The notes beneath the pieces are model-generated. The model searched no databases and was not told the DNA's origin. It saw nothing but the letters and a program-made list of their open reading frames with translations. The position numbers and the translations under genes are program-made. A DNA stretch of 64,000 nucleotides. Origin: Macrostomum lignano (Eukaryota). Shown here one piece after another: positions 7,883 through 60,887 of this stretch. Location of the stretch: assembly GCA_002269645.1 (NCBI GenBank), contig NIVC01001020.1:314839-378838 (forward strand), written 5' to 3'. Position 1 is the first letter of the stretch. Each line of letters opens with the position of its first letter.

Positions 7883-8074
<192 letters not shown>

Positions 8075-10339: not shown

Positions 10340-10340
10340 T

Positions 10341-15106: not shown

Positions 15107-15864
15107 CTATATTCTTATTCCGCAGCACCACTTCGATGTCAGTGACAGCAATACTGGAATACTTCAACAGAGAAACAGCTCTGATTTTCCTGTCGCTTTC
15201 AGATAGCTGGCGCATATAGATAAAAGTTTGCTGCAACTGAGCTGCCGAATCCAGTTGAAACGCGCTTCGATGCTGTCTGATTGGAATTTTCGTAACTGGA
15301 CATCGCTGCAGTCGCCAGCCTACTACGGTCCGGGTCCGAGCGCCTCCACTTAAGAGTTGGTATTCCAGCTGCTAGATCTAGATTTCCTTGCCTGCGCCCA
15401 CCCAGCCTCATCTTCAGCTTCCACTGGCTTCACTTCCTCTCTAGTCAAAGAATCTCCAGCAGTCCATCTATAAATAAAACAGAGCCTGTGATTAACTGCC
15501 AGAGAGGAACACTGCTGGTCACTCACGGCTGGTCAGTAGCAAAATGGAATTCTTTCTTAGAAACGAGTAAAAGTGCATTGCACAGAAACCCGAGCCTTCT
15601 AAACGGTACGAGCAACGGTTAATCTGGCCCTCCCAAGCTGACTGCCTACCCAATGGCCTATACCCATGGGATGGATCTGTTAGCCCACTATATCCCTTAT
15701 CGTTTGCAAAGTTCGCTCTAATCAAAATATTTGGATAGCTGAAAGCAAATTTATTGCCAGCTCGAGGCAACGCATTTGCTTTGATGCCAATGCTCTGCCA
15801 CCCCCCCCCCCACCGCCCAGTGACCGGCCTTCGGTATATTTCTAAAATTAACTCTATTAAAATT

Positions 15865-16920
15865 AAATGAGTGACCGTGGCGCTAAAGTGAGTGACTGCG
15901 ACGCTAAAATGAGTGAGTTTGGTGCTGAAATGCGTGACAGTGGCGCTAAAATGAGTGACTGTGGCGCTAAAATGAGTGAGTTTGATGCTGAAATGAGTGA
16001 CAGTGACGCTAAAATGAGTGACTGTGGCGCTAAAATGAGTGACAGTGGCGCTAAAATGAGTGACAGTGGCGCTAAAATGAGTGACAGTGGCGCTAAAATG
16101 AGTGAGTTTGATGCTGAAATGAGTGACAGTGGCGCTAAAATGAGTGAGTTTGGTGCTGAAATGAGTGACAGTGGCGCTAAAATGAGTGAGTTTGGTGCTG
16201 AAATGAGTGACAGTGGCGCTAAAATGAGTGAGTTTGGTGCTGAAATGAGTGACAGTGGCGCTAAAATGAGTGAGTTTGGTGCTGAAATGAGTGACAGTGG
16301 CGCTAAAATGAGTGAGTTTGGTGCTGAAATGAGTGACAGTGGCGCTAAAATGAGTGACAGTGGCGCTAAAATGAGTGACAGTGGCGCTAAAATGAGTGAC
16401 AGTGGCGCTAAAATAAGTGACAGTGGCGCTAAAATGAGTGACAGTGGCGCTAAAATGAGTGAGTTTGATGCTGAAATGAGTGACAGTGGCGCTAAAATGA
16501 GTGAGTTTGATGCTGAAATGAGTGACAGTGGCGCTAAAATGAGTGACAGTGGCGCTAAAATGAGTGACAGTGGCGCTAAAATGAGTGAGTTTGATGCTGA
16601 AATGAGTGACTGTGGCGCTAAAATGAGTGACAGTGGCGCTAAAATGAGTGACAGTGGCGCTAAAATGAGTGACAGTGGCGCTAAAATGAGTGACAGTGGT
16701 GCTAAAATGAGTGACAGTGGCGCTAAAATGAGTGAGTTTGGTGCTGAAATGAGTGACAGTGGCGCTAAAATGAGTGACAGTGGCGCTAAAATGAGTGACA
16801 GTGGCGCTAAAATGAGTGACAGTGGCGCTAAAATGAGTGAGTTTGATGCTGAAATGAGTGACAGTGGCGCTAAAATGAGTGAGTTTGATGCTGAAATGAG
16901 TAACTGCAGCGCAAAATGAG
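15865..16920. repeat. 21-bp minisatellite with two unit classes (AAAATGAGTGACAGTGGCGCT / AAAATGAGTGAGTTTG[G/A]TGCT), ~50 copies
   Basis: Directly visible. Confidence 0.97.
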
Positions 16921-17481
16921 TGTGAAGTCGTTGAGTGTAAAGGCATATCAGCCACAGTAACCCAGTTGCAGCCAATCCTCTGTAATTATATTTTATATAA
17001 ATAAATACGGTATATGACTTCTATTCTATCTTGAATCCCATCTCTTTCAAACTTCGCTCGTGCCTCTCCACAGTGGGAACTGGTACAACCCTACTAACCC
17101 TATATTGCGTTCACATTTCACCCACTTGTGCCGCATCCCCTTAGTAGCCTCAGCGGTGGTGCGAGAGCATTCTGTTGCAATCGAAAAGTTCACTTTGTAA
17201 CCTTCCCGGTTTATCATTCGCTTTTACGCAGAAATGCATGGCCACTTGGTTGCAGCAAAAATTATTCTCTTTCAGCGCAATGTTGAACTGCACCTGCGGA
17301 AGCACCTGCGGAATTTGCAATGCCCAGGAAATTCCTTCACGAACTATTCGACGAAAGCTTCGAATAGTGCATGGCTACATTCGGTGTGCAACGTTTTACG
17401 GCAAGTCTGTGTTATTCGGGGAGTAGAAGAAATGTTCGGGGTTGTGCGTTGCAATTTTAATTTGAGGGGATCGCAACCCTG

Positions 17482-18117
17482 AGCGCCCCCTGTCTCTTGG
17501 TTCGCGTTGGCACCCGTCTTTTTTGGTGGGCGCCCCTGTCTCTTGGTTCGCGTTGGCACCCGTCTTTTTTGGTGGGCGCCCCTGTCTCTTGAGTTGGGCG
17601 CCCCTGTCTCCTGAGTTGGGCGCCCCTGTCTCTTGAGTTGGGCGCCCCTGTCTCTTGAGTTGGGCGCCCCTGTCTCTTGAGTTGGGCCCCCCTGTCTCTT
17701 GAGTTGGGCGCCCCTGTCTCTTGAGTTGGGCGCCCCTGTCTCCTGAGTTGGGCGCCCCTGTCTCTTGAGTTGGGCGCCCCTGTCTCTTGAGTTGGGCGCC
17801 CCTGTCTCTTGAGTTGGGCGCCCCTGTCTCTTGAGTTGGGCGCCCCTGTCTCTTGAGTTGGGCGCCCCTGTCTCTTGAGTTGGGCGCCCCTGTCTCTTGA
17901 GTTGGGCGCCCCTGTCTCTTGAGTTGGGCGCCCCTGTCTCTTGAGTTGGGCGCCCCTGTCTCTTGAGTTGGGCGCCCCTGTCTCCTGAGTTGGGCGCCCC
18001 TGTCTCCTGAGTTGGGCGCCCCTGTCTCCTGAGTTGGGCGCCCCTGTCTCCTGAGTTGGGCGCCCCTGTCTCCTGAGTTGGGCGCCCCTGTCTCCTGAGT
18101 TGGGCGCCCCTGTCTCC
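17482..18117. repeat. Two 46-bp units followed by a 22-bp minisatellite (GGGCGCCCCTGTCTC[T/C]TGAGTT), ~25 copies
   Basis: Period of 46 at 17528/17574, then period of 22 to 18117. Confidence 0.96.
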
Positions 18118-18698
18118 ATGGATGCCTGTGCAGTTAAACTAAGTTTGTTTTAATATGCACTAACCACACTACTGGTTTGATAAATCTTCAGTAGCATATC
18201 ATTCATCTGAGTGTAAATAATTAATTGTATGTTTTGCATGCGAACTGCCCTATATGCTGAATTTTCACTTTGGTAACAGAAATTAATTACGGCAAAATTG
18301 TTTTGCAAAAAGTAAAAATAAAAAATATCTATCTATTTAAAAAAATAGAACAAAGCATAGTTCAGTTGCGCGTACTTTTAATCTACATTCTTGTTAAAAA
18401 AATTTCAATGAGAATATCTGTGTGCAACCAAAATACACAGGTTACGCTGCTATGCAGTATCAGGAGATCGGAGGGCTATAATTGAGCAAGCAGAAAATCC
18501 TTGTCTTACTGTGGCGGAAAGAACAGGCAATTAATTTGAAGCAGAAGAATCAAAGACAGCAAAGTAGAGGAGCCAAAAATCTTTGAGGCCCGGTTTAGAT
18601 GAACGCGTAAGTTAAAAAGCTTCAATTTGGTGAACAAATAACTTCAACCGGCCTCCGAAAACACTAAGGGGTAATATTGTCTGCTTATCTATCAAAAC

Positions 18699-19266: not shown

Positions 19267-20022
19267 TCAGGGGTAGAAGGCGGTGCTGAAGAACAGTCCA
19301 TGCTGTCGGCCCATCCGCATCATTCCAGCCGACATAGGAGTCTGGTAGGACTTGTCGTAGGAGCCCGGCGCCGGGACCTTGTTGTAGGATGAGACAAACC
19401 GTGGGCAGCTGGAACGGAACGATGAGCGCACGCCCTGCTGGCTCAGCGTGCTCCGACTCGAATCGTACGCACCTGGAGGCGGTCCTTCGCGCGGCTCGAA
19501 CTCCTTGATGACGCGACGGGATCGCGACTTGAAGCAGGAGCCTCTGGCTGGCTCGGGGTCGACGCGGATGCTGTGGTAGGTCTCCACGTTGTACTGCCCG
19601 GGTGTCAGGTTCGACAGCTGTCGATCTACCAGACCTTCGGTCAGTGCGTCCAGCGAGGATTTCTTCGAGTTGCGGAAACCGTAGCTGCGAATGTCTTTGC
19701 TCATCTCGTCAGTGAAGCTGCGGTGGCTGTAGGCTCCAGGCGGCACTCCGCTGCCTCCACCGCCGCCCAGGCCCGTTGCCGCTTCAAGGTTGCGCTGCCG
19801 GCCGGAGCTCTTGAAGGTAGACGAAGGATAGTTGACTCGCTGTATGGAGCTGACCTCGCGCGGCTCGTACTGACCGACTGCCGGGTAGCGGTTGAGCTGG
19901 TCCCGCCACCACGCGCTGCGGTCGGTGGGCTTGTACCGGTCCCAGTCGTTCAGGGGCGCTGGCGGCAGTACTCTTGGCTGGTGCTGGCGTCTCTCAGTAG
20001 GCAGCGCTTCCAGCTGGCTCAT
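19267..20022 (-). CDS. STPG4: SHIPPO/PGP-repeat protein, STPG4-like, 251 aa, coding region intronless
   Basis: Colinear motifs as I recall them for vertebrate STPG4: WWR, TFKSSGR, LTPGQYNV, SCFKS, EGPPPGAY, SSFRSSCPRF, VPAPGSY, MGRQHGLFF. Confidence 0.8.
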   Translation of the reverse strand: MSQLEALPTERRQHQPRVLPPAPLNDWDRYKPTDRSAWWRDQLNRYPAVGQYEPREVSSIQRVNYPSSTFKSSGRQRNLEAATGLGGGGGSGVPPGAYSHRSFTDEMSKDIRSYGFRNSKKSSLDALTEGLVDRQLSNLTPGQYNVETYHSIRVDPEPARGSCFKSRSRRVIKEFEPREGPPPGAYDSSRSTLSQQGVRSSFRSSCPRFVSSYNKVPAPGSYDKSYQTPMSAGMMRMGRQHGLFFSTAFYP

Positions 20023-23681: not shown

Positions 23682-24179
23682 TCACTTTCTATTCTCATTC
23701 TCCAGCTCCTTCATGTACAGCGCAAACAGCGGCGGCGACATCTGGATGTCGATGTTAGGCTGGCGCAGTCGCACCGCTCTGGGATGCTGCGGCAGCGGGT
23801 AGGGCCCGAAAATCCTCAGAGTGGTGTACTTTGAGGAGTCCTCGCCAGCCGTCCAGCCGATGTGGATGTAGTCGCCGTACAACAAGTTGTACCACCTGCT
23901 GTGCACCCTGTACGAGTTCACCAGAGTGCCCGAGATGCTGTGATCGTAGTACCACATGGTGGTCCCGGAGTCGTCCCGGTGCAGGAAGATGAAGCCGTGG
24001 TAGCGGCACACCCGCGTGTCCTCAACCAACATGAGGTCGTTCTCGCGGTCGCTGCCGATTCGGTACACGGAGTCGTAGAGCTCGAACACAAAGTCGGGGA
24101 ATATTCGAGGACAGAGATTGCGCGGCTCCAGCATGCCCCAGGGGCGCCTGACGCCGTCCTGCTGCTGCTGCTGCTGCAT
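23682..24179 (-). CDS. Stand-alone FHA-domain protein, 165 aa, with degenerate phosphothreonine-binding residues
   Basis: PWGML...YRIGSDRENDLML...VCRYHGFI...DHSISGTLVN...LLYGDYIHIG follows the FHA pattern; single exon. Confidence 0.75.
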   Translation of the reverse strand: MQQQQQQDGVRRPWGMLEPRNLCPRIFPDFVFELYDSVYRIGSDRENDLMLVEDTRVCRYHGFIFLHRDDSGTTMWYYDHSISGTLVNSYRVHSRWYNLLYGDYIHIGWTAGEDSSKYTTLRIFGPYPLPQHPRAVRLRQPNIDIQMSPPLFALYMKELENENRK

Positions 24180-26504: not shown

Positions 26505-27534
26505 CGTCTTGTTACAAAACCAGCATCTCGAACTCCATCAGTGAGTATAGTAGTAGCCGAAATACAAGCTCCAAATGACACCCTGAGCATAGGGATCTCC
26601 AGTGGCCTTAGAGGCATCTCTGTAATACTCATTCGGGTGCGTGCAGTGGCAGGCGGTGAACCACCAGGCTCCGTGAAAAATCACTGCGCAGTTACAATCA
26701 GAGCAAGTGTCGTGATCGGCGTCCTTTGTGGTGAACTGCTGCCCGTTTAGAGCAGAAAAGCAGTCGCCGATGCCGGCGCTGCCGGAGAAGCCGGACACGC
26801 TCAGCCGGTAGTTGTCGGACTCGGGACCCACGGAGAAGCTGGAGTACTCAGCCCAGTGCTCAGAGCCGTTCCAGGCTTTCATGAGAAACCGCACCTTGTG
26901 ACTTCCATGCTGCGTGATTTCGTGAAGAGCGTTCAGACCTGAAGTAGCAATTGCCAAGCCATTAGCAGTAGGCATTTGAACATGCAGATATTTTAGTCTG
27001 TACAATAGCTCTAATAGGTCACAACTTTTTGGTCCTCACCGATCCAGTAGTTTCCGTCGGGTCCCTCGCCGAACTCGCTCTGGTACTGAGTCCAGTTGCG
27101 GTAAAAGTCCACTGAGCCGGACACCCTGTGCTGCACGGTGGTCCAGCAGTCACTGCCGGCTGTCTGCAAGGAGACGTCACGCATTCTAAATGAAGGCATT
27201 CGAAGAAGCAACGAAGAGCTAATTCAGTATCTTACCCATAAACCACGCGGAGCTGCCTTGTTTAAACTGCGCGGCACTTCCTGCAGTGGCTCAGGCCCAG
27301 GCGACACCTGAAGTGAGCGCACAGTCCGGAGCTGGCGTTGAACGCTGGCAGCAGCTGAGCACTCAATTCTGGACCGGACCGAGAACGATTTGACAACTTC
27401 GTAATCGGAGAGGCTCTCGTCGCTTGCCCACCAACCGACTCGGAGGAAGCTGCGTCAGACGCGCCAATGCGACCTGCGGCTAGCAGTAGAAGCATGAGAG
27501 CATTGAAGTTTTGCAACTGCATTTCTCTTTTCAT
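26505..27534 (-). pseudogene. Secreted fibrinogen-related (FReD, ficolin/FREP-like) gene with in-frame stop and terminal frameshift
   Basis: Exons 27236-27534 (signal peptide, Cys-rich, TAA at 27262), 27040-~27185 ([18 protein letters not shown]...NYWIG) and ~26505-26938 (FTTKDADHD...NCA...GAWWF). The terminal YSLMEFEMLVL lies in another frame. Confidence 0.85.
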
Positions 27535-31782: not shown

Positions 31783-32249
<467 letters not shown>

Positions 32250-33365
32250 TAAGGCGCGGACGCCCATTCCGCTAATCCTTGAACGGCAGGTAGGGATTTA
32301 GAAAATTTTGAACGGGGGGCGCAGATACTAAGGTACATGCATATGCAGAACACGATAATGTGTATATTTTTTCCATGTAAAAAATTAAAAAATTCTAACT
32401 CGACGGGGGGCGTGCCCTATGCGCCTTCCCCCCTAAGTCCGCCACTGCTAAACGGACTACTACGAGTACTACGCACTCGTGCCTACGTACAATTGCAAGC
32501 TCAATTAATTTAATATACATGTACATGTATGTAGACATCGACGACATGGGTCGAGCATTATTGCTGTACTGTAGCTGCTACTACCTGCATTTTTTCATAG
32601 CGAACGCAGACTAGCTGCCGACTTCAATTCTAATGTCAATTTGAACCAATAAATCGGCAACCACTTGTACAGGTACGCCGCTCAGTTTACGTACGCTCGC
32701 TGTGACGCTTCCCTTTTAGCGCTTTCGTGCGTAAAATTCGTTTTCTCTTGTGTTAACACAGTTAAGCAAAACTTAAGTACAATTCTCTTTTGAAACGTAT
32801 GTTGTAAAAAATAACTTGATAAATGCATTTTTATATTATTTCTGAAACAAAAAATTTATTGAAATTCTAGTTGCAGAAGCTGGAAACAAATAACACCGTG
32901 ACTGCCTGACTGACCCGGGCGGTAGTAGGCCAAAAATAAATTTATACCTAGTTACCGTCAGGCGCCATTTCTATATAGCACATCACTCTACCTAAGTGGG
33001 TTTCACTTCACTTCACGTCAGCTATGAGCTATTCCATGGATGTGATTATGGATTGTTGCTTGATGTTTTTTAGCAAAGTGCCGATGTAGTGTTCGGCGTT
33101 CGCCAGTAAATATCAGGATTCAGGGTGCGCCATCGCCAGTATTATGTCAGAACATAGCTTTGAGTCCTGAGATAAATTTTGTATGCCTGCAGGTCATGTC
33201 ATGCACTATGCTATGGCCAATACTGGGCAATGGGTCATCATAGCCTAGTGATTCTTCTAGGGGCCTATCCAAGTCATAGGGCCTAATCCCTTGGCTTTAA
33301 TTATATATAGGGCCTATATATATTAAGACGCAGAGGGGAGGCCCCTTGCGCGCAGGCGTTCACAG

Positions 33366-33674: not shown

Positions 33675-34529
33675 TGCAGAACAGGCGGGAGGGCAGGCAG
33701 CAGCAGCCTGAGGCGAGGGGTTTTGGCTTTAATGCCAAACCACAAAGCTATTTTGAATATCTAACCTAGGCCCAACCTAGCCAATTTTAGGGGCGCATGA
33801 CCAAGACCGCCACACACCAAGACCGCCACAGCTCTTACTGGCTACTGGAATTGAGGGGGAGCTACCAATCTTCCAGCATTGCTATTGGTTGTGATGGGTT
33901 GTGGAGTTAGATGAGGAAGAAGCGTCCCAAGATTGGTCAGGAATAAGATGAATAATTAAGTGGCCCAAAACGATTGCAAGTCAACAAGGGCAATTTTAAA
34001 AATATCTTTAACAAAAGCACAATTTGTTACTTTTAGCAGTGGATGAGCATGAATAATGCTTTTGAGAGCAAAAGCTTGAGTAATTAATTTTAACTTCACT
34101 TTCAAAAAGCCTCTCAAAAGTTCAATTGCAAGTTGCTGTAATTTGAAAAGTTTTTTTACGAGCTCGCACGATTATTTGAGTGTATATTCGGCGTCTGGGT
34201 GCGTCTAGTGCATTATTACGGACAAACAAATCTAGCGGCTTGATATTGTGCTATGGTACGTGGATTTAGAGGTGCCATTCATTTTGACGAAGGTTTACAT
34301 GTACTTTGACGAAAGCAAGTTAACCACTATCGTTCACTCACATAACAGAAAAAGCGCATCTTAGGCCCAATGCCTATGAGAATGTCTGTGTAAATGTACG
34401 AGCATTATTGTGTGTATTTTATTGTGTACTCAAAGCCGAGAATTTTGGTGAAAGCAAAGGGAGGGGATGAGAGTAAATGTACATGCACATGTAATTTGAG
34501 AGAATATATGGATCCGGGGGTTAGGAGAT

Positions 34530-34544
34530 CTCTCACTCTCTCAC

Positions 34545-34586
<42 letters not shown>

Positions 34587-35090
34587 TCTTTAACTCACTC
34601 TCTCACTCACTCACTCACTCACTCTCTCTCTTTCTCTCTCTCTCACTCACTCACTCTCTCACCCTCACTCCTATATTCTCGCTTTCTCTCTCACTACTCT
34701 CTCTCACTCACTCACTTACTCACTCACTCACTCACTCACTCACTCTCTCACTCACTCACTCACTCACTCTCTCTCTTTCTCTCTCTCTCACTCACTCACT
34801 CTCTCACCCTCACTCCTATATTCTCGCTTTCTCTCTCACTCACTCTCTCTCACTCACTCACTTACTCACTCACTCACTCACTCACTCACTCTCTCACTCA
34901 CTCACTCACTCACTCTCTCACTCACTCACTCACTCACTCACTCACTCTCTCACCCTCACTCCTATATTCTCGCTTTCTCTCTCTCTCACTCTCTCTCACT
35001 CACTCACTCACTCACTCACTCTCTCACTCACTCACTCACTCTCTCACCCTCACTCCTATATTCTCGCTTTCTCTCTCACTTTTAATGCTA
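34530..35090. repeat. Compound (CT)n/(CTCA)n microsatellite with a recurring ~35-bp spacer
   Basis: CTCTCACCCTCACTCCTATATTCTCGCTTTCTCTC recurs four times. Confidence 0.95.
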
Positions 35091-35318
35091 TATTTCTTGA
35101 TCAAAAACTATTTAAGCTCCGATATCAGAAAACCAGTTTTTATTATATAGATATGCTAATCTAATACAGTTATACATAAACAGAAAATTCAAAATTCGGG
35201 GCCCGTATCAGTGGGGGGGGGATAACTGCTATTTGATGAGCGCCCAGCCAATGAGAGTTCTGGAATTTTTGGAAGAGCGATCAATCCACTGCCAAAAATA
35301 AATTTTATGGTAAAAAAT

Positions 35319-35805
35319 CACTGTTTCTTACCCACTGTTTCACCCAATGTTTCACCCACTGTTTCACCCACTGTTTCACCCACTGTTTCACCCACTGTTT
35401 CACCCACTGTTTCACCCACTGTTTCACCCACTGTTTCACCCACTGTTTCACCCACTGTTTCACCCACTGTTTCACCCACTGTTTCACCCACTGTTTCACC
35501 CACTGTTTCACCCACTGTTTCACCCACTGTTTCACCCACTGTTTCACCCACTGCTTCACCCACTGTTTCACCCACTGTTTCACCCACTGCTTCACCCACT
35601 GTTTCACCCACTGCTTCACCCAATGTTTCACCCACTGTTTCACCCACTGTTTCACCCAATGTTTCACCCACTGTTTCACCCACTGTTTCACCCACTGCTT
35701 CACCCAATGTTTCACCCACTGTTTCACCCACTGTTTCACCCACTGCTTCACCCACTGTTTCACCCACTGTTTCACCCAATGTTTCACCCACTGTTTCTCA
35801 CCCAT
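35319..35805. repeat. 12-bp minisatellite (CACCCACTGTTT), ~40 copies
   Basis: Directly visible. Confidence 0.97.
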
Positions 35806-35814
35806 TGTTTCTCG

Positions 35815-36375
35815 GAGAGTGGAGAGAGGGTGAGAGTGGAGAGAGGGTGAGAGTGGAGAGAGGGTGAGAGTGGAGAGAGGGTGAGAGTGGAGAGAGGGTG
35901 AGAGTTGAAAGAGACTGAGAGTAGAGGGTGAGAGTAAAGAGAGGCTGAGAGTTGAAAGAGACTGAGTGAAGAGAGGATGAGAGTGGAGAGAGGGTGAGAG
36001 TTGAAAGAGACTGAGAGTAGAGGCTGAGAGTAAAGAGAGGCTGAGAGTTGAAAGAGACTGAGAGTAGAGGGTGAGAGTGGAGAGAGGGTGAGAGTTGAAA
36101 GAGACTGAGAGTGAAGAGAGGCCGAAAATGGAGAGAGGTTGAGAGTAGCCGTAGAGGGTAAGAGTGGACAGATGCTGAGAGTTGAAAGAGACTGAGTGAA
36201 GAGAGGATGAGAGTGGAGAGAGGGTGAGAGTTGAAAGAGACTGAGAGTAGAGGGTGAGAGTAAAGAGAGGCTGAAAGTGGAGAGAGGCTGAAAGTAAAGA
36301 GAGACTGAAAGTGGAGAGAGGCTGAGAGTGGAGAGAGGGTGAGAGTGGAGGGAGGGTGAGAGAGGAGACAGTGTG
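35815..36375. repeat. Diverged 17-bp purine-rich minisatellite (GAGAGTGGAGAGAGGGT)
   Basis: Directly visible; abuts the 12-bp array. Confidence 0.9.
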
Positions 36376-38966
36376 AGATAATTAAAGAGAGACATCGAGA
36401 GATTATTTCCTAATCCAATTTAGCTGTACAGAGCATGGATATACATGTACCTGTATCTATCACACAATGCGCATATTGTATACCAGGTCAATCATTGCCA
36501 ATTGATTGCATGGTAAATTAAAAGCAAGTAGTGTAGCGACATACTGTCCGGCTGTTGTATGGTCAGAACGGCGTACAAGCACGAGTATACTACATGGTAC
36601 CCAATGTGATGTACAAATGTACATTTATAGCTATTATACGTTCAAATAGTTTTAGAACGTATTTTTTAATGAACAGGGAGAACATCCGAAATCAAAGTAA
36701 ACGATTACATGTACATGTGATGTACATGCATTTTCGTGCCATACATTTTGATTGTATTAAGAGCGATCACAGTAACTTTTGAGTGAGTGATCATGTGTGC
36801 GAGTGAGTGAGCGAGTGAGCTAAATGAGAGGGTGAGAGAGTGAGTGAGTTATATAGTGATTGAGTGATTCAAAAGTGAGTATATGAAAGCTGCTTACCAG
36901 GCCTCGGTACAACTCGATCGAGGCCCAGCTAGTACAAATCACGGACTACTTGAGTGTCGTTTTATAGGAAGCCTGTACATGTACACGTACTCGTAATAAA
37001 AACGGTATGGCTGCACGACTCACCAATGGCACATTGGCAATCGAACATGCTCGAATCACTCATGAAAACTAACATTATAACAAATTATAACAATGACAAC
37101 CAACTCAAGGACCACATTCAAAACTGCGAATTAAGAATGTAGTTAAGTCAAGAGCCTTTTTTCACAGCTTTCTACTAAAAGTAGCTGTTTATTTAGGATT
37201 GATAGTTCCTTTACAATTCAAATTGAATGAAAAAAACGAGGGCTCACTCACGGTCTCGCACCCACCCGGCCCGCTCACTCACCGGTTCCTCTCTCGCGGC
37301 CTTGTCGTCCCCATCTCACCCCTCCCCAGCACCATCCAATAACATGACGAGCCAAATTCCTCCCCCCTAGCTCCCCCAAGTGTGGCGGTCTTGGTGTGTG
37401 GCGGTCTTGGTCCTACACCAGCTACGGCGGCTACCATGACAAGAACCACTAGAAGTTACTATTGTATTTATTAATAAAATATTTCTTTATTTTTTTTAAT
37501 TTAACCATCATAGTATTTGCACAGCAAGTTTGTCACTTCATTTAGATGGTATTTGTTTTAAGTGTAAAACTGTAAAAATAACTGTCTCACTATTTATAGA
37601 GTCACCATAACATAACAATAACAACTGCCTCACAAAAACTAGGCCTACTTCTTATTCCAATTTGCCTTTTGTATGCATATTAGGTCACGGGACCAGGACG
37701 CTCGGCCTCAATGACTGAATTCATTGTAGGCCTACTAATGCAATGGCTACCCACTAAATTTAATGCTTAGGATAAGCCATATGTTTTGCCTTTGGCTTTG
37801 AAGTAGGCCCTAGGGAGGGCGGCTAGGGCCTACCCAGTGTTCCTCATGCCGGAATTATTCCGGAATTTAAAGCCGGAATAATTCCGGCATAAATGTCTGG
37901 CTACTATTCCGGAATAATTCCGGCATGAAAATTCCGCCTACATTCCAGAATTATGCCGAAAATATTCCGTTAGTTCATGTTTTTTAATTGCATGGCTGGC
38001 CACCTAATTGGCCTAGTTTTCATGTTAAGCCTTTTTTATAATAGGAGAGCTTTGATAATTTTGGCTAAATATCCTTTCAAGGGTAGTTCTAGTTCATGCG
38101 CTTTTCTGTCATGCTTGTTTGAAGCTCGTAGCTCGTAACTGTAGAGAAAGTGCTTTTCTCATAAAAGAAGTTTTCCAAAACATTTTAACCCAGCTTAAGA
38201 CAAACAATTGCATGAATTCAATAGTCGCAGCTGACATTAAGTTATTAACAACAATAAACGCAAAACGATATTGCGATGTGACAAAAATTATAGCTACATG
38301 GTTAAAAAGAGACAACCAGAATGGATGAGACCACTTTATTTTGACAAAGAGAAAATGTGTTTTGTGTTTTTACAGTTACATAATTAATGATAAGCGCAAT
38401 ATGTGCGCAAGTACGTAGACATGGGTTTGTAAAAAGCAGCTGGCGCAAATACGTAGTAGAAAACTAAATACAAAAGGTGGATAGTGCAACAAATAACAGA
38501 TCTGCGATTAATATTGCATAAAGAAAATTAAGTAACAAAACGTAAGTAAGTATATTGGATACACGAAATTCGGTTAAATAACTTCAAATAAAAATTTGAT
38601 AAAATTTAGGACAAAAACGACGTGCATTTAAATATGATGGAGTGTAAAGTCTGCATTAGAGTCAGAAGTCATGCGCAACTCACATACATGTGTACATTAA
38701 ATTGCATTATGCTACATTGGTGCAAAGTGACGCAATAAGTATGCACACAAATAAAAACGAAATATAGCAAAAAACTAAATAACAAAACAAAAGCAAAATA
38801 CTAGGCACAAAGCAGATATAAATTATGAAATTATATAATTATGAAATTATATAAATTATCGGTGGAGAAATCCAACCGGGGGCGCTGATGATTGCTAGAC
38901 CCCTAAAAACTTGTTGAAACGGGAATGCTTAGAAAAGCACATCAATAAAGAAACAAACTGGGGACT

Positions 38967-40925
38967 TCAGGGACTGGTATTAGAGGCATAGGGTATAATA
39001 ACGAACCCATTTTCGGTTGGAATACAAATGGCCTTGCCAGTTGGATGCACAGTAACAGACGTAGCATGACACCTCACGATATAGTAGCCAATTCCTAGGG
39101 TGGAACTGGGGTAAGGATACTTGTACAAATCTCGCGAAAACTTAAGACTATGACCTGTGACAGAGCCATCATCGTGCGTTGAAGTTATTAGTAGTACCCT
39201 TGTACCAACCATAGCACAGTTGTTAGGAGCCGTGGACCTAAAAGCAAGGTCAGCGCAACTGGGGCTGGAAAGAGTTTGCATAAACTGCAATTGTGATAAC
39301 GCGTGTTCAAAAAAAAACCTTGTTTTTTTGGTTCGACTCTTAAGCACGTTAAGATAGGCTTCAAACGGAAAGGTTGAAAAATTGTCTAGCTCTCCAAACT
39401 GCTTGACGCACTCTGCTAAATGCAGAATCGCATGAAAATTGTACGACACGGCATGTTCACCATACAGTACAGGAACTTGGCTAACAAAGGTTTGGATACA
39501 ATGAGCAGCGTGGTCTCTCAAATGCCTGAACCGCGGAGAGCAAAAGACATAAATTGAAAAATGCAGTAGCATGAAATGATCATAGTAAAGGCCAGACAGA
39601 ATGTCTTTAAAAAGAAACGGACCAAGGTACAACAAATGAAGACGATACTCAGTGGCTTTAAAATTGACTAATTCAGTATCGAATCGTCGTGGGCGTCGTT
39701 GAAATTCAGAGGGGATATACTTGGCTAGGCTATGGGAGAGATCTGAAAGCCTTGTCAGCTGATCAGCAGTAACACGACCACGAATCCGAAAACCTTTTAC
39801 TAAACTAAACATCCAGGAAAAAATACGGCGAGTAATGCCAAGAATGGCAGCATGCTGATAGTCTAGAGGAAAACCAGTTAGCAACCCTGTGATTTCATGC
39901 AGAGGGGACAGAGACGATTGATTATTCTCTCTCAAAGCACTGTAATCCTCATCAGTACGAGGCTCTCCAGGAACAGTGGAGTACACAACTCGACTTAACA
40001 GCGTTCGACCAACTGAGCGGCAGAAACCACATCCTCGATGGGCTGTATGCGATGCAATGCATTGGAAGTAAGCACGAGCAACTGCATCACAGATGAATGC
40101 CACATTGCCGAGCTTTACTCTTCCATTCTGCACCATCATTCCAACTGACTTCAAAACCTTGATCTCGTTAATGAGCTTACGGAGGAAAGGCTCAATTGGT
40201 GGCTTTCCAACTCCACAGTATAGCCCTACTGGATAGACTCGACTGACAGGCCTTCCGACACTAGAGAACTGAATCAAAATTGGCCAAAATTCTGTCTTTG
40301 AACTCTTCCAAAGTGGCAAGCCATCGATGTTGACTTTAAGGTCCAGAAAATTGTCTGTTTCGCTACGTAACTTGACACTCATCAACTTCAAGGCTATTGG
40401 AATACTTTTGCTTATCGAGAGATAGGCAAAGTTCCCTCCTGGCATGGCTTCCTTGCCAACAGTTGAGTGGGACATGTTGCTCTTCTTAAGTTGCTTAAAA
40501 TTAGCAGGAACGTCGTGGCCCAGTCGGAGGAGCAGCTGAAGTATCATGGTCACAGCTCGCTGGGGGAGACAAAACAAAAGATAGATCTTCCACAATTCGC
40601 TAATCACAGAGCAACCTTGGCCAACTCCAGTTCCATCTCCATTATCAGTGCCAGCTTCATCTGCGCCATCGACAGCCTCGCAGTCATCATCATCGGAATC
40701 GTCATATGACTCACCAAACAGTTGGTCATGGACAAAATCCTCATCAACCAACAGTTTATACAAGCCATCGTTGTTGACAACGGACTCAATTAAGTGATCC
40801 ATGCCCACAAACTCACCACAAGAACAATCAGTACTCGCGTCCTCCCCGAGATCCATGGCTACCTCACCAGTTGCAGCATCAGAAGAATCCAAACCAAAGT
40901 CTATCCCTGCTAGGTACTTATCCAC
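38967..40925 (-). CDS. EnSpm-family DDE transposase (652-aa open frame; true start probably on an upstream exon)
   Basis: NIDGLPLWKSS...FWPIL, FICDAVARA...HRGCGFC, DYQH, FKATEYRL.LLY.GP, SYNFH..LHL, FPFEAY. Confidence 0.92.
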   Translation of the reverse strand: MDKYLAGIDFGLDSSDAATGEVAMDLGEDASTDCSCGEFVGMDHLIESVVNNDGLYKLLVDEDFVHDQLFGESYDDSDDDDCEAVDGADEAGTDNGDGTGVGQGCSVISELWKIYLLFCLPQRAVTMILQLLLRLGHDVPANFKQLKKSNMSHSTVGKEAMPGGNFAYLSISKSIPIALKLMSVKLRSETDNFLDLKVNIDGLPLWKSSKTEFWPILIQFSSVGRPVSRVYPVGLYCGVGKPPIEPFLRKLINEIKVLKSVGMMVQNGRVKLGNVAFICDAVARAYFQCIASHTAHRGCGFCRSVGRTLLSRVVYSTVPGEPRTDEDYSALRENNQSSLSPLHEITGLLTGFPLDYQHAAILGITRRIFSWMFSLVKGFRIRGRVTADQLTRLSDLSHSLAKYIPSEFQRRPRRFDTELVNFKATEYRLHLLYLGPFLFKDILSGLYYDHFMLLHFSIYVFCSPRFRHLRDHAAHCIQTFVSQVPVLYGEHAVSYNFHAILHLAECVKQFGELDNFSTFPFEAYLNVLKSRTKKTRFFFEHALSQLQFMQTLSSPSCADLAFRSTAPNNCAMVGTRVLLITSTHDDGSVTGHSLKFSRDLYKYPYPSSTLGIGYYIVRCHATSVTVHPTGKAICIPTENGFVIIPYASNTSP

Positions 40926-48931: not shown

Positions 48932-49775
48932 TCACAAGCGAACGGCGAAATCTCCAGCCACGGCCCTCAGCTCGTGCGGCACAGCGGCGAATCTCAGCAG
49001 GTAGCAGGCGTTCAGGTGGAACAGCACGGCCTGGCAGTCGGCATGGCAGCAAATCAGACACAAATTCAGGCTCATCACGGGCTGCACGGTGCGGTAGAAG
49101 GGCCCGCTGGAGGAGGTCATGTTCAGGTAGACTCGATCAGCAAAAGTGAAGTATCCGCTGACTGTTAGGGACAGAGAGAGTTCACAGCAATTCCGGTGAT
49201 ACTGACCCAATGAGCCATCAGAATTCAGTTAGCATTGCACTGTGTGTCGTGACGTGTGACGTGTACGAGCGTATCAAAGTTTAAATCGGCTTTGACGCTA
49301 GCTTGCTCATACTCTGAGTTTACTTTCTCATGACAAATCAATAAATACTGTTAGAACAATTGAACTCACCTGGACGAAGGTAGACCTGCCGGTACACGGA
49401 GTTTCTCCAAGCTGATCCGCAGATTTGGGCAGAGTTGCCGGCGCAGTTCATGTTGCAGTCGCTGTTGGCAGCCTGGCCGTGGATGCCATAGGAGTTTCCG
49501 CAGCGGCATTCGCTTGCATACTGCGCGCCAAAGTACTCAAAGTTTCCATAGGCGCAAATCTCGCTGCACAGTTCCAGAGTCATCTCGCTGAGGTCGACAA
49601 ATGAACCTTTCAGGTGAGACACCGAGTACGGCCCGATGGTGGACCTGCCTTCGAGTCCGCCGAGGTCTCGAGTTTCGGTGTCCACGAAGCAGCCCACCAG
49701 GCCGAATTCGGCGCCCAGCGAGCAGCCGAAAGCGACGCAGCAGCAGAGAAGCGACAGAATTGATGAGGCCTGCAT
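48932..49775 (-). CDS. Secreted WSC-domain + PAN-like protein, intact two-exon gene
   Basis: Exon 1 is 49370-49775 (signal peptide; GCFVD...MTLELCSEIC...FGAQYASECRCG...CNMNCAGN...CG...RNSVY); exon 2 is 48932-49161 (CLICCHADCQAVLFHLNACYLL); phase-1 splice is in frame. Confidence 0.9.
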
Positions 49776-51617: not shown

Positions 51618-53491
51618 CTACTTATTGAGTGACAGCTTGTCAAGGACGAGTCGAAGTTCGTCGCCATCCAGGGTAACGCGTTTCTCAGAGATTATGGTCT
51701 CGATTTGGTGCCTGCAGAATTCCCTGTGTTCCAACGACTGGCTGTAGTGGGCCAGGGTAAGAAGCTCCTCTAAATCCGGGTCTTCTTGCAGTTCAACACG
51801 CCACTCATCAAAAATGTCGATTGGAAGATCTCGTAGAAGCTCAGCTTGGAGACTCCAGCTGAGGCAGCGAAAATTCACGTACAGGTGGGCGGAGCCAGGC
51901 TGCGACAGTCTGGCTTTCAACAGAGTCTGAGTGAACTCAGGGAGGAACGGCAGTCGAGGCGGACTGTCGCAGGGGAGGCAAAACCTCCACGCCCAGTCTT
52001 CCTCAATATCGAAAAAGTCTTTACTCAGAAGGTTTTCAGGCTTCCAACCTCTCTGCACTTGATGCGATTGCAGCTTCTTCAGGAGGATGTCAGCCTGTGC
52101 AGAATCCTTGGATTTCACATACGCCATGACTTTCATGCACAAGACTGCGCATTTACACCACTGAAGCTGATCCAGGATATTAAGCTGTTCCATTAGCTCG
52201 TCCTTGTCAGTTGCTTCTGACTGCAGATCAACCATGCATTGGTTCACCATGCAGTAGACCGCAATGGATGAATCTGCAGGTTGTGTGGCTTGAAAAGGTT
52301 TTTCTACTTTTCTGGTTAGAGGTAGCAAAGTGAACGGGTGAAAGTAGAAGTCCTCCGACTGTAGAGACATCATCTGTTCTTTCATTGCCTCATACACCTG
52401 TCTTATATTGCTTCTAATCTCTCTGAATTGGTCCGAAACTTTTGTCCTTGCGTTGACTAAGTCACCTCCGACTCCAGCATTTTTGAAGTACAACGGAGCG
52501 TCAAGCATGAAGAAGTGCGGCATGCAGACATCAGGCGAGCTGCCGGAAGCAACGAAGCTTAGCATCGTGTCGAGCGATTCATTTAGCAGATCGACCAAGT
52601 TCTCCACCGAATGCCAAACGCTGCTATCTTTGCCTTGCTTCTCCAGCATGAACAGGAGCAAAGTCTTGGCGTGGTAGGTCTTGAGACCTGGTGTTTGCAA
52701 ATTGATGGGCATGTATATCTTAAATATGTATTTCAAGATGACGAAAAGTTGGCCTTGTACTTCGCTTACGCTCTCCAAGATTTCTTTTTCATGGAAGCTG
52801 AAACTCACTCTGAGTTCGTTCGGCGAGTTGGGTCGAGTCGCTCTAACGAGGTGCACTGGGGGCAGATCTCGGTTAGGAAGAAGCTTTGCAATTCGGTCCT
52901 GACAGAAGTCGCTGCAACATTGGATAGCTTCGCAGATGTCTTCTGTGGGTCGAACACCGCTCGCTGGGGTCGTCATCGCCGGCTGGCTGCCTGAAAAGAG
53001 ACAACAACAGTTTATACCTTAGTCGAATTGTTGCCAGGGCTCAGTTAGTACTTTAAATCAGTCTTTGATCTTCGTTGCGGCTTGACTATTAAAGTTGTAA
53101 GGTTTAACAGAGCACAAGCAAGCGTTACTGATAAGCTGGGCAAAACTTACCCGATCCAGCTTGCACCTGAGCGTGGCCTTCTCTAACCTGAAGCAGTGGA
53201 GAATTTTTGCAATTTTCAGACCTTTGGCAGCCTCCTTTCAGGTGAGTTACTTGTCTAGAGTCCATCGTAGTCCAGTCGATGTCGGATTGAGCCCCTACTC
53301 TGCCGTTCACCTGCACGAGACTGTTCCCCCAGCCTTCTCGGTAGCTGCCAGTCATCTGCCTCTGACCATCTGAAGAGCTTTGAACCAGCGTTTGCAGAGT
53401 GCGACCCAGTACTTGCTGACACTTTGCCCTGCGCAGACTGAATCCTGCCTGGGTAAGCTGCTGGTGCCAACTCCGACTTAGCTCTCTGTTT
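51618..53491 (-). CDS. cGAS-like receptor (cGLR/Mab-21 family nucleotidyltransferase), >=570 aa; first exon not located
   Basis: Exon 53151-53491 encodes MTGSYREG-x-SDIDW and splices in frame (phase 1) to exon 51618-52990: EDICEAIQC, HLV...ELRVSFSFHEKEIL, LKYIFK, LKTYHAKTLLL, W, MPHFF (Mab-21 C-lobe). Confidence 0.88.
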
Positions 53492-53971
53492 CTAAATTTG
53501 TTAAAGCTAAATATTCAGTAACACATACGATCGTATTTAAAAAAACAGAAGCAAAATTTTCTTAGAAACATGCTCTCAATAGTAGATTGTGTCTATGGTT
53601 TTGGCACCAGGACAATGCATTTAGACAACCTCCGAATCGCTTACCGAGTTTGTTGACGCAAAAATCCATTGTCGTGTTTTCCGAAGTTCTAAAAGCACAA
53701 AATTAATTTTAAAACACTTAAATTCGTTTTTGTACATGGAAGACATTGTAAGAAGGAGGATGAGTGAAACTCAAAAAATTTCCTGAATTTCATTGGGGCC
53801 AATTTTCGTTGCAAGCATGTTAGCTATGGTTGCTTGTCTAAACGGATTTCGCAAGGATTTTGCTCTTGCATTGCATACATTAAATAGAGCTTTACCATAG
53901 ACAAACTTGGTCGAGAGAAACAACATTACCAGAACAAAACCGGCCTCCAGTGAAATTTTCACGACTTGTTA

Positions 53972-54895
53972 CATCTTTTTGCATTCAATTTCAACCAAAG
54001 TCGCATTCAATTTCAGCAAGCTGGCATTCAAAATCGGCAATCTAAATTAGCCATCTAAATCTTCATTCAATTTAAGCATGCTCGCATTCCATATCAGCGA
54101 ACCACATTCAGCGAACTGCATTCAATTCAATTTTGCCTCAAACTTGTCTGCTCGTCTATGGGTAAACTTTATTGACGCGTGCAGATTTTGCGCTCAATTT
54201 CGGCAATCTGCATTCAAATTCAGCAAAATTTTATTAACTTAACGTAAAACAAAACGAACGTCGTCCAATACATGTACAGTGTCATAGGGAACAAAAACAG
54301 AAAATCGAAGTCACGTCAAGTGTGCTTCAGTCCCCATTGGTGTTCATGAGCTCTGCAAGTTGTAAATAGTCCTGCCCTGTCTCGTGGGCATCGATAAGGC
54401 GGGCTCTATCTCCGTCAGAAACTCGTGCGTATGGTCCTCGACCTCTTCTTCTTCTCACTCAATTTCTTCGACAGCTTGTTCTTTGATGATCTCATTGTCA
54501 CTCATATCTATGTCGATATCTACACTTGCAGTAAAAAAAACAGAAAGCTGGGGTGAAGTGAAATGAAAGGATCGACAAGCCTCTTTGGATGTAAACTGTA
54601 CATGGAATTGAACATTCGTCTGTGGTTGAAATCGAATGTGTTTTGCTGAATTGAATGCAGATTGCCGAAATTGAGCGCAAAATCTGCACGCGTCAATAAA
54701 GTTTACCCATAGACGAGCAGACAAGTTTGAGAAAAAATTGAATTGAATGCAGTTCGCTGAATGTGGTTCGCTGATATGGAATGCGAGCATGCTTAAATTG
54801 AATGAAGATTTAGATGGCTAATTTAGATTGCCGATTTTGAATGCCAGCTTGATGAAATTGAATGCGACTTTGGTTGAAATTGAATGAAAAAGGTG
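53972..54895. mobile_element. Non-autonomous Tc1/mariner-IS630-type element, ~256-bp TIRs, TA TSD
   Basis: Near-identical inverted arms 53972-54228 and 54641-54895, flanked by TA. The interior keeps RGRGPYARVSDGDRARLIDAHETGQDYLQLAELMN (54342-54452, minus), resembling a transposase N-terminal HTH. Confidence 0.85.
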
Positions 54896-54957
54896 TAGTG
54901 TCCTTTCGTAGTCTCTGAATTTGCATTGATATTCAGAAAAAAAGAAATTTATATTGA

Positions 54958-56834
54958 TTAAAAGACGCACCCATTTTGCAGCACCGGAAGCACTTGGTAG
55001 TTATGATATTGATTAGCCAGCTGCTCGCATGTCATGCCTTGGTGATCTTGATGACTTGGGTCTGCTCCTTCGTTTATCAGAACCTTGGCAGATAAAACAT
55101 GGCCCGCTATGCACGCTCGAGACAGAGCCGTCCGACCTTGGCCATCTACAGCCCTCACAGACGCACCGTGAAGCAGCAATTCATTGATGACGTCGTGCTG
55201 ACCCGCATCTGCTGCCAGCATTAAAGCGGTTGCTCCTGTGCTATTCTGCTGATCGACATGCGTGTCGCTATAGTATTGGCTTCTGATTATCGTGAGTGCC
55301 AGTGCGACAAGACTGTGCGTGATGGACAGGCAGAGCAGTTGAGCGATGCGAACGGCATGCATTTTAGACAGCGTATATCGTAAAACTGAATCGTCACCAG
55401 GAATCTCCAGGTGCTGAGAGAGCAGCTTCAGCAGTGGAGAGTTGCGGAGCAGCCAGTCAGCTGGAATGGCTGCCACCGCTTTTCCGTCCGAGCTTGAGGA
55501 ATAAAATCGGAACTGACCCCGACTCCGGCTTTTGAAGCAGTGGACACAAGAAACTCGTTGAGTCTGCGGATATCCATCTTTTCTGCAACAGTCTCCGTCG
55601 CGGACCTCCAGTACTCGTCTTTCAGCAACATGCTGGAAGGAATATACTTGCCGACAGTCGCGACAACATCCCAGTTTTTCGTATCTGCTGCAGCCCCTGC
55701 AGTTATCATGCAGCTACTTTCGAGAATGCTTTGATCGTCAATGATCTCAATGAAAGTTTTCACTTCATTCCATTCGTTTCTGTCTGCAAGGATTTCTACT
55801 GCTTTCAGGCAGCACTGATCCCTCATGTTTTTGTCTTCAATGGTTAGAGCCAGAAAAACCAGATCTTCGCACTGAGCAGATGAATGTGCTAAGTCTGCAA
55901 GCTTCATGCAGCACAGATACCTGCGACTGGGGTCAGCGATCAGCTCAACTAGAGACTTCGCGATATCCCAACTGCCAGATAATACAAAGGATTCAGCAAA
56001 ATCGATGCATTTTTTATCTCTAAGTGCTGGATTAGAAATATTTCTTAAAAGCGAAGTAGCTGCTTCCAAGCAATTGGATGCAGCAGATTGCTCTGCATAG
56101 GAGATGCAGAAAGAATCCCGGCCGTCCGAATCAGAAATCATCTGCCCAAGAGAGGCCACACAGTTCATATTGCCATGGCTGGACGCAGATTCTGCAGCGT
56201 CTATGCAGTATTGATCTTTGAGTTGCCTATCGCGAATTGTACCTGCTAGAAAAATAATGAGTTCATCGTTAAAAAGATCGTTATTTGCAAGTGCAGGAGC
56301 GTCTTCAAAAGTTTCGTCTGTTGTGCCAGCGTTTTCCGAAACGGCCTTTATGTAAGATGAACAGAAGTCATCTCGCAGTTGTTCGTCAGAGATGCTTTGC
56401 ACCAAAAAAGTCACAACATTCCAGTGCTGATTTCCTGCAGCGATCCAGGCTGCTTCCGCACAACAACTATCTTTACTGCTTTTGTCGAAAAAGAATTCCA
56501 TCAGAGCAGCGACAACTTCTCCGTGGCCATTGGCTGCTGCAGCTTTTGTCGCCTCCGTGCAACACTTGTCCGAGCTGTCTCTGTCCGAAATCTTTTGCAA
56601 ATATTTTTCCAGATCTTCTCTTGTACCACTGGCGGCGGCTTTGACTGCATTTTCTGCTGCATTCTTCTCCAAAATATCTTCTATTTTGCTTTCCAGGAAG
56701 TTTCGAGCACGATTGAACATAATTATATGCGTGAAAAACTCACTTGACGCAGTTTTCTTAATTGGCAAGGTATTTCGTTGAAACCATTTATTTGCTGTGA
56801 ATTCGAAGATTATCGTTTGTAATGCTTTAAACAC
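54958..56834 (-). CDS. Ankyrin-like repeat protein: ~9 atypical 33-aa repeats, then 3 canonical ankyrin repeats; the two halves are in different frames
   Basis: ORF 55428-56834 has a 33-aa period (DxCCxxAAxxAAxxGxWxVVxxL); ORF 54958-55476 has GATALMLAA, GRTALSRAC and GMTCEQLA. They overlap at ~55430-55480. Confidence 0.75.
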
Positions 56835-59227: not shown

Positions 59228-60887
59228 TTACAGAACTTGACATTCTCTCTTCTTCTTGGTCCTTTTGAGATACTGTTCCTGGAGAGCGCTGACAAGTTCC
59301 GTAGGGAGAGATGCCAGATTTTCCTGCAATTTGAATTTAATTGCTGATTATTACAGCAATGTTGCAACAGTTTCAACCTGTCTAGATTAGTTTGGATTTA
59401 ATTAATTCTTGGAATTAAGCAGTCAACCTTCTATCTACGACCTCTAGGAGCACCAGAGGCGCCAGCACCAGAGGCGCCAGCACCAGAGGCGCCAGCACCA
59501 GAGGCGCCAGCACCAGAGGCGCCAGCACCAGAGGCGCCAGCACCAGAGGCGCCAGCACCAGAGGCGCCAGCACCAGAGGCGCCAGCACCAGAGGCGCCAG
59601 CACCAGAGGCGCCAGCACCAGAGGCGCCAGCACCAGAGGCGCCAGCACCAGAGGCGCCAGCACCAGAGGCGCCAGCACCAGAGGCGCCAGCACCAGAGGC
59701 GCCAGCACCAGAGGCGCCAGCACCAGAGGCGCCAGCACCAGAGGCGCCAGCACCAGAGGCGCCAGCACCAGAGGCGCCAGCACCAGAGGCGCCAGCACCA
59801 GAGGCGCCAGCACCAGAGGCGCCAGCACCAGAGGCGCCAGCACCAGAGGCGCCAGCACCAGAGGCGCCAGCACCAGAGGCGCCAGCACCAGAGGCGCCAG
59901 CACCAGAGGCGCCAGCACCAGAGGCGCCAGCACCAGAGGCGCCAGCACCAGAGGCGCCAGCACCAGAGGCGCCAGCACCAGAGGCGCCAGCACCAGAGGC
60001 GCCAGCACCAGAGGCGCCAGCACCAGAGGCGCCAGCACCAGAGGCGCCAGCACCAGAGGCGCCAGCACCAGAGGCGCCAGCACCAGAGGCGCCAGCACCA
60101 GAGGCGCCAGCACCAGAGGCGCCAGCACCAGAGGCGCCAGCACCTGCAGAATATTTAGAGAATGGCACTCACGTGTGTCAGCGCACTGCATTCAATGTAC
60201 TTGAGAGCTTTAGTCTTCTTAGCCAACTTTTTTCCCTGCTTGAAGGTGACCGGCGCCCTTCCATTCTTTGCCAGTTTCTCAACCACATCCGGGTCTGTCC
60301 TCAAATCTGCCTTGGTGCCAATCAGGACGAATGGAGTACTGCTATTGTAGATGTAACTCGGAGCCTCTCGCAACCACTTGGTTTCCACATTTTCAAATGA
60401 CGCCGGGTCGATCACCGAGAAGCAGATCAGGTAGCCGTCGTAGCTGGGATACGCGGGAGGACGCAATCTGAAGTGGAAAGTAGAAAGTATGCAAAGCAAG
60501 ATGAATTATCATGCAGTGTACAGTCTGATGTACAGCCAAAGACATCGATGAGTGTTGCTGAACTGGCAGCTAACTTATAGTCTATGGCCAGCCCTGCGGA
60601 CCGCTATAAGTGGATTTCTTTCAGGCTTTTAATAATAAGAGGTTTTAAAGTTATATTTTAGCTGATCAGTTGCACTCGATTTACCTGTCGTATTCCAGTG
60701 GCACCGGCAAGTCAATTAATTGCAGAATGAAGTCCTCTGTACCAATTTTTCCTGTGATTTCCTTGGGGTCGCACGTATTCGGCACGTACTCCGATGGAAA
60801 CTGGCTGGTTGCAGAAGTTATGATCAGACTGGTTTTTCCAACGCCCTTGTCGCCGACCACAGAGCATTTACACGTAAAACATTGCAT
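59228..60887 (-). CDS. Atypical Rho-family (Rac/Cdc42-like) small GTPase, 197 aa, three exons, CAAX = CQVL
   Basis: Exons 60685-60887, 60173-60467 and 59228-59323 total 594 nt in frame. GDKGVGKT, TKADLR, Rho insert, CSAL and polybasic KRTKKKRECQVL* are present. Confidence 0.9.
59449..60144. repeat. Perfect 15-bp minisatellite (GGCGCCAGCACCAGA), ~46 copies, in the last Rho intron
   Basis: Directly visible; I saw no variant units. Confidence 0.99.

Follow-up and report, generated by a model that had tools for sequence, protein, structure and literature searches.

The analyzed window is a 64-kb stretch of the Macrostomum lignano genome (bases 314,839-378,838 of contig NIVC01001020.1, assembly GCA_002269645.1, the final 64 kb at the 3' end of the contig). 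It carries on its minus strand a multi-exon gene, at ~366.4-371.6 kb of the contig, whose product almost certainly belongs to the ankyrin-repeat cGAS-like receptor (cGLR) family of this animal. A preliminary description, made from the letters alone, had allowed for a flatworm host, which M. lignano is, and had placed a Mab-21/cGAS-like nucleotidyltransferase split by an intron at positions 51618-53491 of the window. Those coordinates delimit exactly two exons and the description captured the core of the protein, but the gene runs upstream to ~56720, and the description had missed both its further ankyrin exons and the helical domain at the C-terminus. The domain order is ankyrin-like repeats, two to three canonical ankyrin (ANK) repeats, the Mab-21/cGAS nucleotidyltransferase core and an acidic helical C-terminal domain. 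In window positions, the gene is laid out as follows:

51618..52990, minus strand: last exon, stop codon included, encoding the strand of the putative third catalytic Asp, the Mab-21 C-lobe and the C-terminal domain
52991..53150, minus strand: intron 3, 160 nt, phase 1, GTAAGT...TCTCTTTTCAG, an in-frame GT..AG intron
53151..53491, minus strand: exon for the N-terminal spine helices plus the GS and DxD catalytic motifs, identified by tblastn and hhalign
53492..54970, minus strand: intron 2, 1479 nt, GTGCGT...AATTTAG, with fitting phases
54971..55492, minus strand: ankyrin-repeat exon with two to three canonical ANK repeats, identified by tblastn and Pfam
55493..55545, minus strand: frame-change zone, 53 nt, GTCCAC...TTATTCCTCAAG, explained by an intron, by an insertion that shifts the frame or by an assembly indel
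55546..56720, minus strand: N-terminal exon, ~392 codons, start ATG at 56720, with degenerate ankyrin-like helical repeats containing Cys-Cys pairs

An open reading frame (ORF) alone conceals the catalytic N-lobe of this protein. As the preliminary description had pointed out, the ORF track gives the C-lobe: the 452-amino-acid (aa) ORF at 51618..52976 starts partway through a longer reading frame and contains neither the GS nor the DxD motif. On the minus strand, frame 0 stays open from 53491 down to 53151, where a GTAAGT donor follows, and the acceptor TCTCTTTTCAG precedes 52990. Joining 53491-53151 to 52990-51618 keeps the frame and yields 570 codons. The GC content of intron 3 is 39%, against 49-54% in the flanking exons.

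We assessed this splice comparatively, using homologs and the gene structures of paralogs. Both exons are matched, in colinear order, by 29 homologs in tblastn; for the paralog P0001, residues 176-290 fall on 53490-53149 (E 7e-32) and residues 289-744 on 52994-51666 (E 1e-165). Every homolog reads through the junction without a break (...EGHAQVxxGAG/SQPAVTA..., with the slash at the junction), the window gene having AGSG/SQPA against AGAG/SQPA. At its own genomic locus, P0001 has a GT..AG intron of 571 nt at the identical codon and in the identical phase as intron 3, and P0005, P0008 and P0010 have an intron at the same codon, which brings the number of such paralogs to four. Such agreement goes far beyond chance. 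We regard the 53151/52990 splice as established by sequence homology, which supports the intron-split nucleotidyltransferase that had been proposed.

The spliced 570-aa product contains the motifs of a nucleotidyltransferase active site. These are M46-T47-G48-S49 (codons 53355-53344, with T47-G48-S49 at 53352-53344), D70-I71-D72-W73 (53283-53272, with D70-I71-D72 at 53283-53275) and E130-D131-I132 (52943-52935, with the D131 codon at 52940-52938). Twenty residues separate GS from DID and 56 separate DIDW from EDI, so that the M-T-G-S-x20-D-I-D-W string and the later acidic residue reported from the letters are indeed present in the spliced product. Among 99 family representatives, G48 and S49 are each retained in 98, D70 in 97, D72 in 94 and D131 in 85, and all family-invariant residues are intact in the window protein.

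To the canonical Mab-21 proteins the family is linked by hhalign. The family profile aligns with 16 PF03281+PF20266 proteins over 263 columns (probability 99.75%, E 2.6e-27), spanning residues 2-280 and both lobes. The catalytic positions coincide residue for residue in this alignment, which pairs mTGS with fGS, SDIDw with SDxD, and sQPAvta..RPaqDtcxAxxCC with HGPAxt..DxVxAxrC. Since its strand is paired with that of the canonical relatives, D131 is the homolog of the third catalytic Asp, a position for which it had been named as a candidate. A classical third-Asp strand is found in divergent M. lignano members listed in Table S3 of an earlier survey, for example TDLIPAF in PAA86972.1 (Li et al., 2023; PMC9980059).

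Four further residues of the N-lobe, H83, C88, H106 and C139 (codons 53244-53242, 53229-53227, 53175-53173 and 52916-52914), are conserved in 86-92 of the 99 representatives; the first three are encoded by exon 53151..53491. As a lead only, these residues may form a zinc site in the N-lobe from the segments around the third Asp.

Upstream of the core, the ANK exon is recognized by Pfam (Ank_2 2.6e-13, Ank 2.6e-12) and by tblastn with residues 1-144 of P0001 (E 2e-39). It ends in ...AAT GG/GTGCGT, and its phase matches the single leading base (A) of the exon that begins at 53491. The N-terminal exon, which lies in a 468-aa ORF, is matched in tblastn by the N-terminal repeats of P0002, P0019, P0021 and P0029, with E down to 1e-36, and has a sub-threshold Pfam match to Ank_2 (1.8e-4). 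The four-exon model comprises 1136 codons with no stop codon. Within the ANK exon, an ATG at 55362 is a possible start of a shorter ANK+cGLR product, equivalent to the annotated paralog P0001. A foldback element of 915 bp (53977-54891) sits in intron 2, with terminal inverted repeats of 241 nt that are 98% complementary; this element makes up most of the length of the intron and has a short internal ORF (54327-54458, minus strand) reading ...DRARLIDAHETGQDYLQLAELM...

Searches with the spliced protein returned 29 matches (E 1e-15 to 1e-202), all from M. lignano except one metagenome protein. An exhaustive profile search of 1.84 billion representatives extended these to 872 relatives, 81 of them at E <= 1e-30, and the close clusters sampled were from M. 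lignano in 10 out of 10 cases. Distant relatives carry Pfam Mab-21 (PF03281) together with Mab-21_C (PF20266), some with TPR repeats, and the sole named non-flatworm organism among the distant canonical relatives sampled is the annelid Lamellibrachia satsuma (P0113). With a profile of 11 family sequences, the best matches in the PDB are cGLR1 (8gjy, 2e-5) and many cGAS entries (7e-5 to 6e-4). MAB21L1 comes below both at 6e-3, and the protein lacks close sequence similarity to the MAB21L1/L2 developmental subfamily. A single-sequence phmmer search of all PDB chains, including MAB21L1 (5eog), gave no match at E <= 10. In the Pfam scan of the spliced protein only the C-lobe PF20266 is found (52739-52506, E 1.4e-5, 25.6 bits vs a cutoff of 24.1), and the C-terminal 349 aa scanned alone have no Pfam match.

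AlphaFold2 (AF2) models reach a predicted TM-score (pTM) of 0.76 for the 345-aa core and 0.80 for the 570 aa. In them, GS lies in the turn between a strand and a helix, and a beta strand begins at D72 and another at D131. Every top Foldseek match in the PDB is to cGAS or MB21D2 (probability 1.0), and GLD-2 and cGAS/DncV-like nucleotidyltransferases (CD-NTases) come next. The core is mildly basic (pI 8.4). The C-terminal domain of ~225 aa is acidic and is modeled as helical over residues 351-568, with a predicted local distance difference test score (pLDDT) of 80-94; for this segment the Foldseek matches are weak and TPR-like.

In the survey of Li et al., cGLRs are defined by a sequence motif, by homology over two lobes and by AlphaFold similarity (Li et al., 2023; PMC9980059). 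The window protein has the motif h[QT]GS-X8-20-[DE]h[DE]h-X50-90-h[DE]h with one deviation, a Glu before the third Asp. Homology over both lobes is given by hhalign, and AF2 with Foldseek predicts structural homology to cGLR/CD-NTase enzymes.

The same survey had already reached this family. Its Table S2 gives ANK domains for the M. lignano proteins PAA67649.1, PAA58690.1, PAA68676.1, PAA86972.1 and PAA45980.1, and its Table S3 names five proteins of M. lignano that were cloned for a screen of 140 enzymes, PAA68676.1 and PAA93208.1 among them (Li et al., 2023; PMC9980059). The first of these two (BOX15_Mlig016402g1, the P0002 of our searches) is 56% identical to the window gene, and the second is nearly identical to P0006. 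Because these tables list M. lignano ANK-cGLRs and record their cloning, the family is known and already screened, and the earlier suggestion of an unrecognized second-messenger pathway has to be given up. The accompanying statement that flatworms have few or no active cGLRs is roughly right for most flatworms but overlooks M. lignano; the label 'active' given to the gene was drawn from motif conservation only. Li et al. report loss of cGLRs in flatworms otherwise, with M. lignano as the exception that they found; they place its family among the cGLRs with predicted complete active sites and describe ANK- and TPR-fused cGLRs as a minority architecture (PMC9980059). That study was the only specific one to emerge from our literature search on Macrostomum combined with cGAS-like or STING. 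A search with the human STING ligand-binding domain gave 156 matches, of which the named ones listed are all from deuterostomes, and it is uninformative for flatworms.

Compared with the catalogued M. lignano ANK-cGLRs such as PAA68676.1 and PAA93208.1, the window protein is alike in species and in the order of ANK repeats, cGLR core and helical C-terminal domain. It shares with them TGS, SDIDW, RPxxDxxxAxxCC and the His/Cys positions, as well as an intron at the same codon before SQPA, but the identity is just 52-59%. The window gene differs from them in being absent from annotated sets, in having a long N-terminal repeat exon with an unsettled frame junction, and in a shorter linker between ANK repeats and core. 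From the sequence comparisons it appears to be a new, unannotated paralog of the catalogued family, and a 1136-codon immune-type gene is apparently missing from the M. lignano protein sets. As a paralog it extends a striking lineage-specific cGLR expansion in a phylum otherwise reported to have lost cGLRs. Another paralog, P0010 (52% identical), lies on the same contig at NIVC01001020.1:168,336-171,562. As this is ~195 kb away, the cGLR family is dispersed along the chromosome and not solely tandem. Copies 97.6-98% identical to the window are present on contigs NIVC01000616.1 and NIVC01002108.1, consistent with the duplicated genome of M. lignano. A different Macrostomum species as host, suggested at first by best matches of only 57% identity, was rejected because the loci of two neighboring genes on NIVC01001020.1 match the window at 100% DNA identity.

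Outside the species, the nearest canonical relatives are the Mab-21 proteins with PF03281 and PF20266. Both lobes align, the catalytic positions match, and a helical extension follows the core at the C-terminus as it does in the window protein. These relatives differ in having ~22% identity, ~100 aa between DxD and the third Asp, and HGPA where the window protein has SQPA, and N-terminal ANK repeats are absent from the sampled set. Human and mouse cGAS and the Drosophila-type cGLR1 (4k9b, 7uyq, 8gjy) have in common with the window protein the bilobed Mab-21 nucleotidyltransferase fold, with the GS motif, DxD on the next strand and the third Asp on a neighboring strand. They are its best sequence-profile and Foldseek matches, with 14-19% identity in structural alignments. 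Unlike them, the window protein has a shorter segment between DxD and the third Asp, the conserved H83/C88/H106/C139, and added ANK and C-terminal helical domains. MAB21L1/MAB21L2 and MB21D2 (5eog, 7lt1) have the same fold, MB21D2 being among the top Foldseek matches, but are not orthologs. The bacterial CD-NTases (DncV, CdnE, CdnG, CdnB) of the cyclic-oligonucleotide-based antiphage signaling system (CBASS) belong to the same superfamily, follow the same logic of a sensor enzyme that makes a nucleotide signal, and appear as weak Foldseek matches. They are far more distant (E 0.05-1), and the window protein is an animal one, with introns and animal-type repeats.

We lean slightly toward reading the product as a nucleotidyltransferase that would make a nucleotide signal upon activation by a ligand. 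The predicted core would have two lobes, of which the N-lobe carries G48-S49, D70-x-D72 and D131 and the C-lobe is helical. Like characterized cGLRs, it would bind two nucleoside triphosphates, with D70, D72 and D131 coordinating two metal ions. A ligand would switch the core on, leading to a cyclic or linear nucleotide signal, and recognition of the ligand or of a partner would fall to the ANK and C-terminal repeats.

Several observations weigh against this reading, or against a sound gene to carry it. The Pfam N-lobe model PF03281 has no direct match on the spliced protein. The Foldseek E-values are ~1e-3 with TM-scores to cGAS of just 0.43-0.46, and the AF2 loops adjoining the active site (58-68 and 109-129) have pLDDT <50. 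The distance from DxD to the third Asp is 56 aa, vs ~100 in the canonical relatives aligned. The residue preceding D131 is a Glu, where the published motif has a hydrophobic residue; in the M. lignano proteins that Li et al. accepted, this residue is a Gln (PMC9980059). The 15 active enzymes of that study are described as coming from other phyla, none being from a flatworm (PMC9980059), and no STING is known so far from flatworms, a 2026 study finding the planarian Schmidtea without cGAS and STING (PMC13563047). A collection of 5.8 billion proteins, holding the GenBank and UniProt sets of M. lignano, contains no identical or near-identical protein (best identity 59%), and because of this the gene appears unannotated. 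At the 5' end, the frames of exon 1 and exon 2 differ, so that bridging them requires a 53-nt intron with a weak donor, and the paralogs P0005 and P0008 have a single uninterrupted exon at this zone. Removal of the 53 nt (55545-55493) restores collinearity with P0002, P0005 and P0008. Because the exon of P0005 and P0008 is continuous there, the frame change may come from an intron gained here, from a true frameshift or from an indel in the assembly. The 53-nt intron as the sole 5' model is unsupported by the gene structures of the paralogs, and we keep it as one of these three options. The catalytic part would be independent of the 5' junction, as ATG 55362 would give a P0001-like ANK+cGLR product.

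Could the protein instead be a non-catalytic scaffold or sensor of the Mab-21 type, with a fold and acidic residues that serve nucleotide or metal binding or stability and with signaling by protein-protein contacts through the ANK and C-terminal domains in place of a diffusible nucleotide? Large repeat domains flank the core on both sides, and in some paralogs the chain also includes ANK repeats and a caspase domain, suggesting direct signaling at the protein level. Li et al. count human MAB21L1/2 as having complete putative active sites, with nucleotide synthesis not understood, and have no flatworm enzyme among their active cGLRs despite the five that they cloned (PMC9980059). That screen is weak negative evidence and says little here, since no activity is reported for the majority of the 140 enzymes. 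Moreover, G-S, D-x-D and D persist in 85-98 of the 99 representatives, in paralogs down to 25-30% identity, which is the pattern expected for catalytic residues. We consider a scaffold unlikely, though it is the most probable of the alternatives.

Somewhat less probable is that this paralog is not expressed or was disabled recently, and so is a young pseudogene, in a family that is very large and evolves fast. No match exceeds 59% identity and exact-product look-ups found none for the 452-aa ORF or the 482-aa ORF, though neighbors on the same contig are on record, namely a SHIPPO-repeat ORF (19267-20022) and an FHA ORF (23682-24179), both single-exon. To this can be added the frame change between the N-terminal repeat ORF and the ANK ORF, where the exon of P0005 and P0008 is uninterrupted, and the foldback transposon in intron 2. 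A disabled copy fits poorly with four exons that are open over 1136 codons, with family-invariant residues that are all intact, and with three canonical splice junctions, two of them in the phase of the paralogs. The frame change could be an assembly indel, and even without the N-terminal exon ATG 55362 would start a product like the annotated P0001. An active nucleotidyltransferase with another chemistry, making OAS-like linear 2'-5' oligonucleotides or carrying out template-independent tailing, seems improbable to us. OAS, GLD-2/TENT and TUTases have the same pol-beta-type triad, and GLD-2 (4zrl), TUT7 and OAS1 (4ig8) appear lower in the Foldseek lists; it is to Mab-21/cGLR specifically, and across both lobes, that the sequence profiles link the protein, and the best structural matches are cGAS and MB21D2.

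For the signal-making nucleotidyltransferase that we favor, the questions of ligand, product and reader of the signal concern the whole family and are not specific to the window copy. M. lignano is a transgenic model that is tractable by RNA interference, and the family is experimentally approachable in it. Three annotated models, P0035, P0038 and P0177 (PAA59752.1, PAA93319.1 and PAA80948.1), have a cGLR core, ANK repeats and a C-terminal caspase domain (Peptidase_C14), an observation that we note as a lead only. Caspases with an ANK prodomain are a flatworm specialty whose activator is unknown (PMC11463336). It is conceivable, though we think it quite doubtful, that the expanded ANK-cGLR family of M. 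lignano, with at least 81 clusters at 50% identity, works independently of STING as a sensor system for immunity or cell death. Its stand-alone members, the window protein among them, would then act on flatworm-specific ANK-caspases, via ANK contacts or via a nucleotide product with a new receptor. If true, this ANK-caspase route would explain an apparent inactivity under standard double-stranded DNA or RNA conditions.

The rest of the window contains further ORFs and repeats. Directly downstream of the cGLR gene lies an ORF with a WSC domain (49338-49775, minus strand, Pfam 1.2e-16), and 25 kb from the gene lies one with a fibrinogen C-terminal domain (26538-27005, minus strand, 1.7e-26). Such domains are characteristic of proteins that bind carbohydrates or act in recognition, and look-ups located no complete protein on record for either ORF. 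The minus strand also has a retrotransposon integrase ORF at 8780-10411 (Integrase_H2C2 and rve) and a 652-aa ORF at 38967-40925 with no Pfam match; both are probably remains of mobile elements. Tandem or low-complexity arrays occupy 5745-6888, 7857-8100, 10649-13999, 15519-16975, 17457-18119, 31826-32353, 34394-36395 and 59415-60191 and yield long spurious ORFs on both strands. Extreme strand asymmetry marks a 3.3-kb block at 10.6-14.0 kb, where the GC skew reaches 0.87 and the AT skew 0.92.

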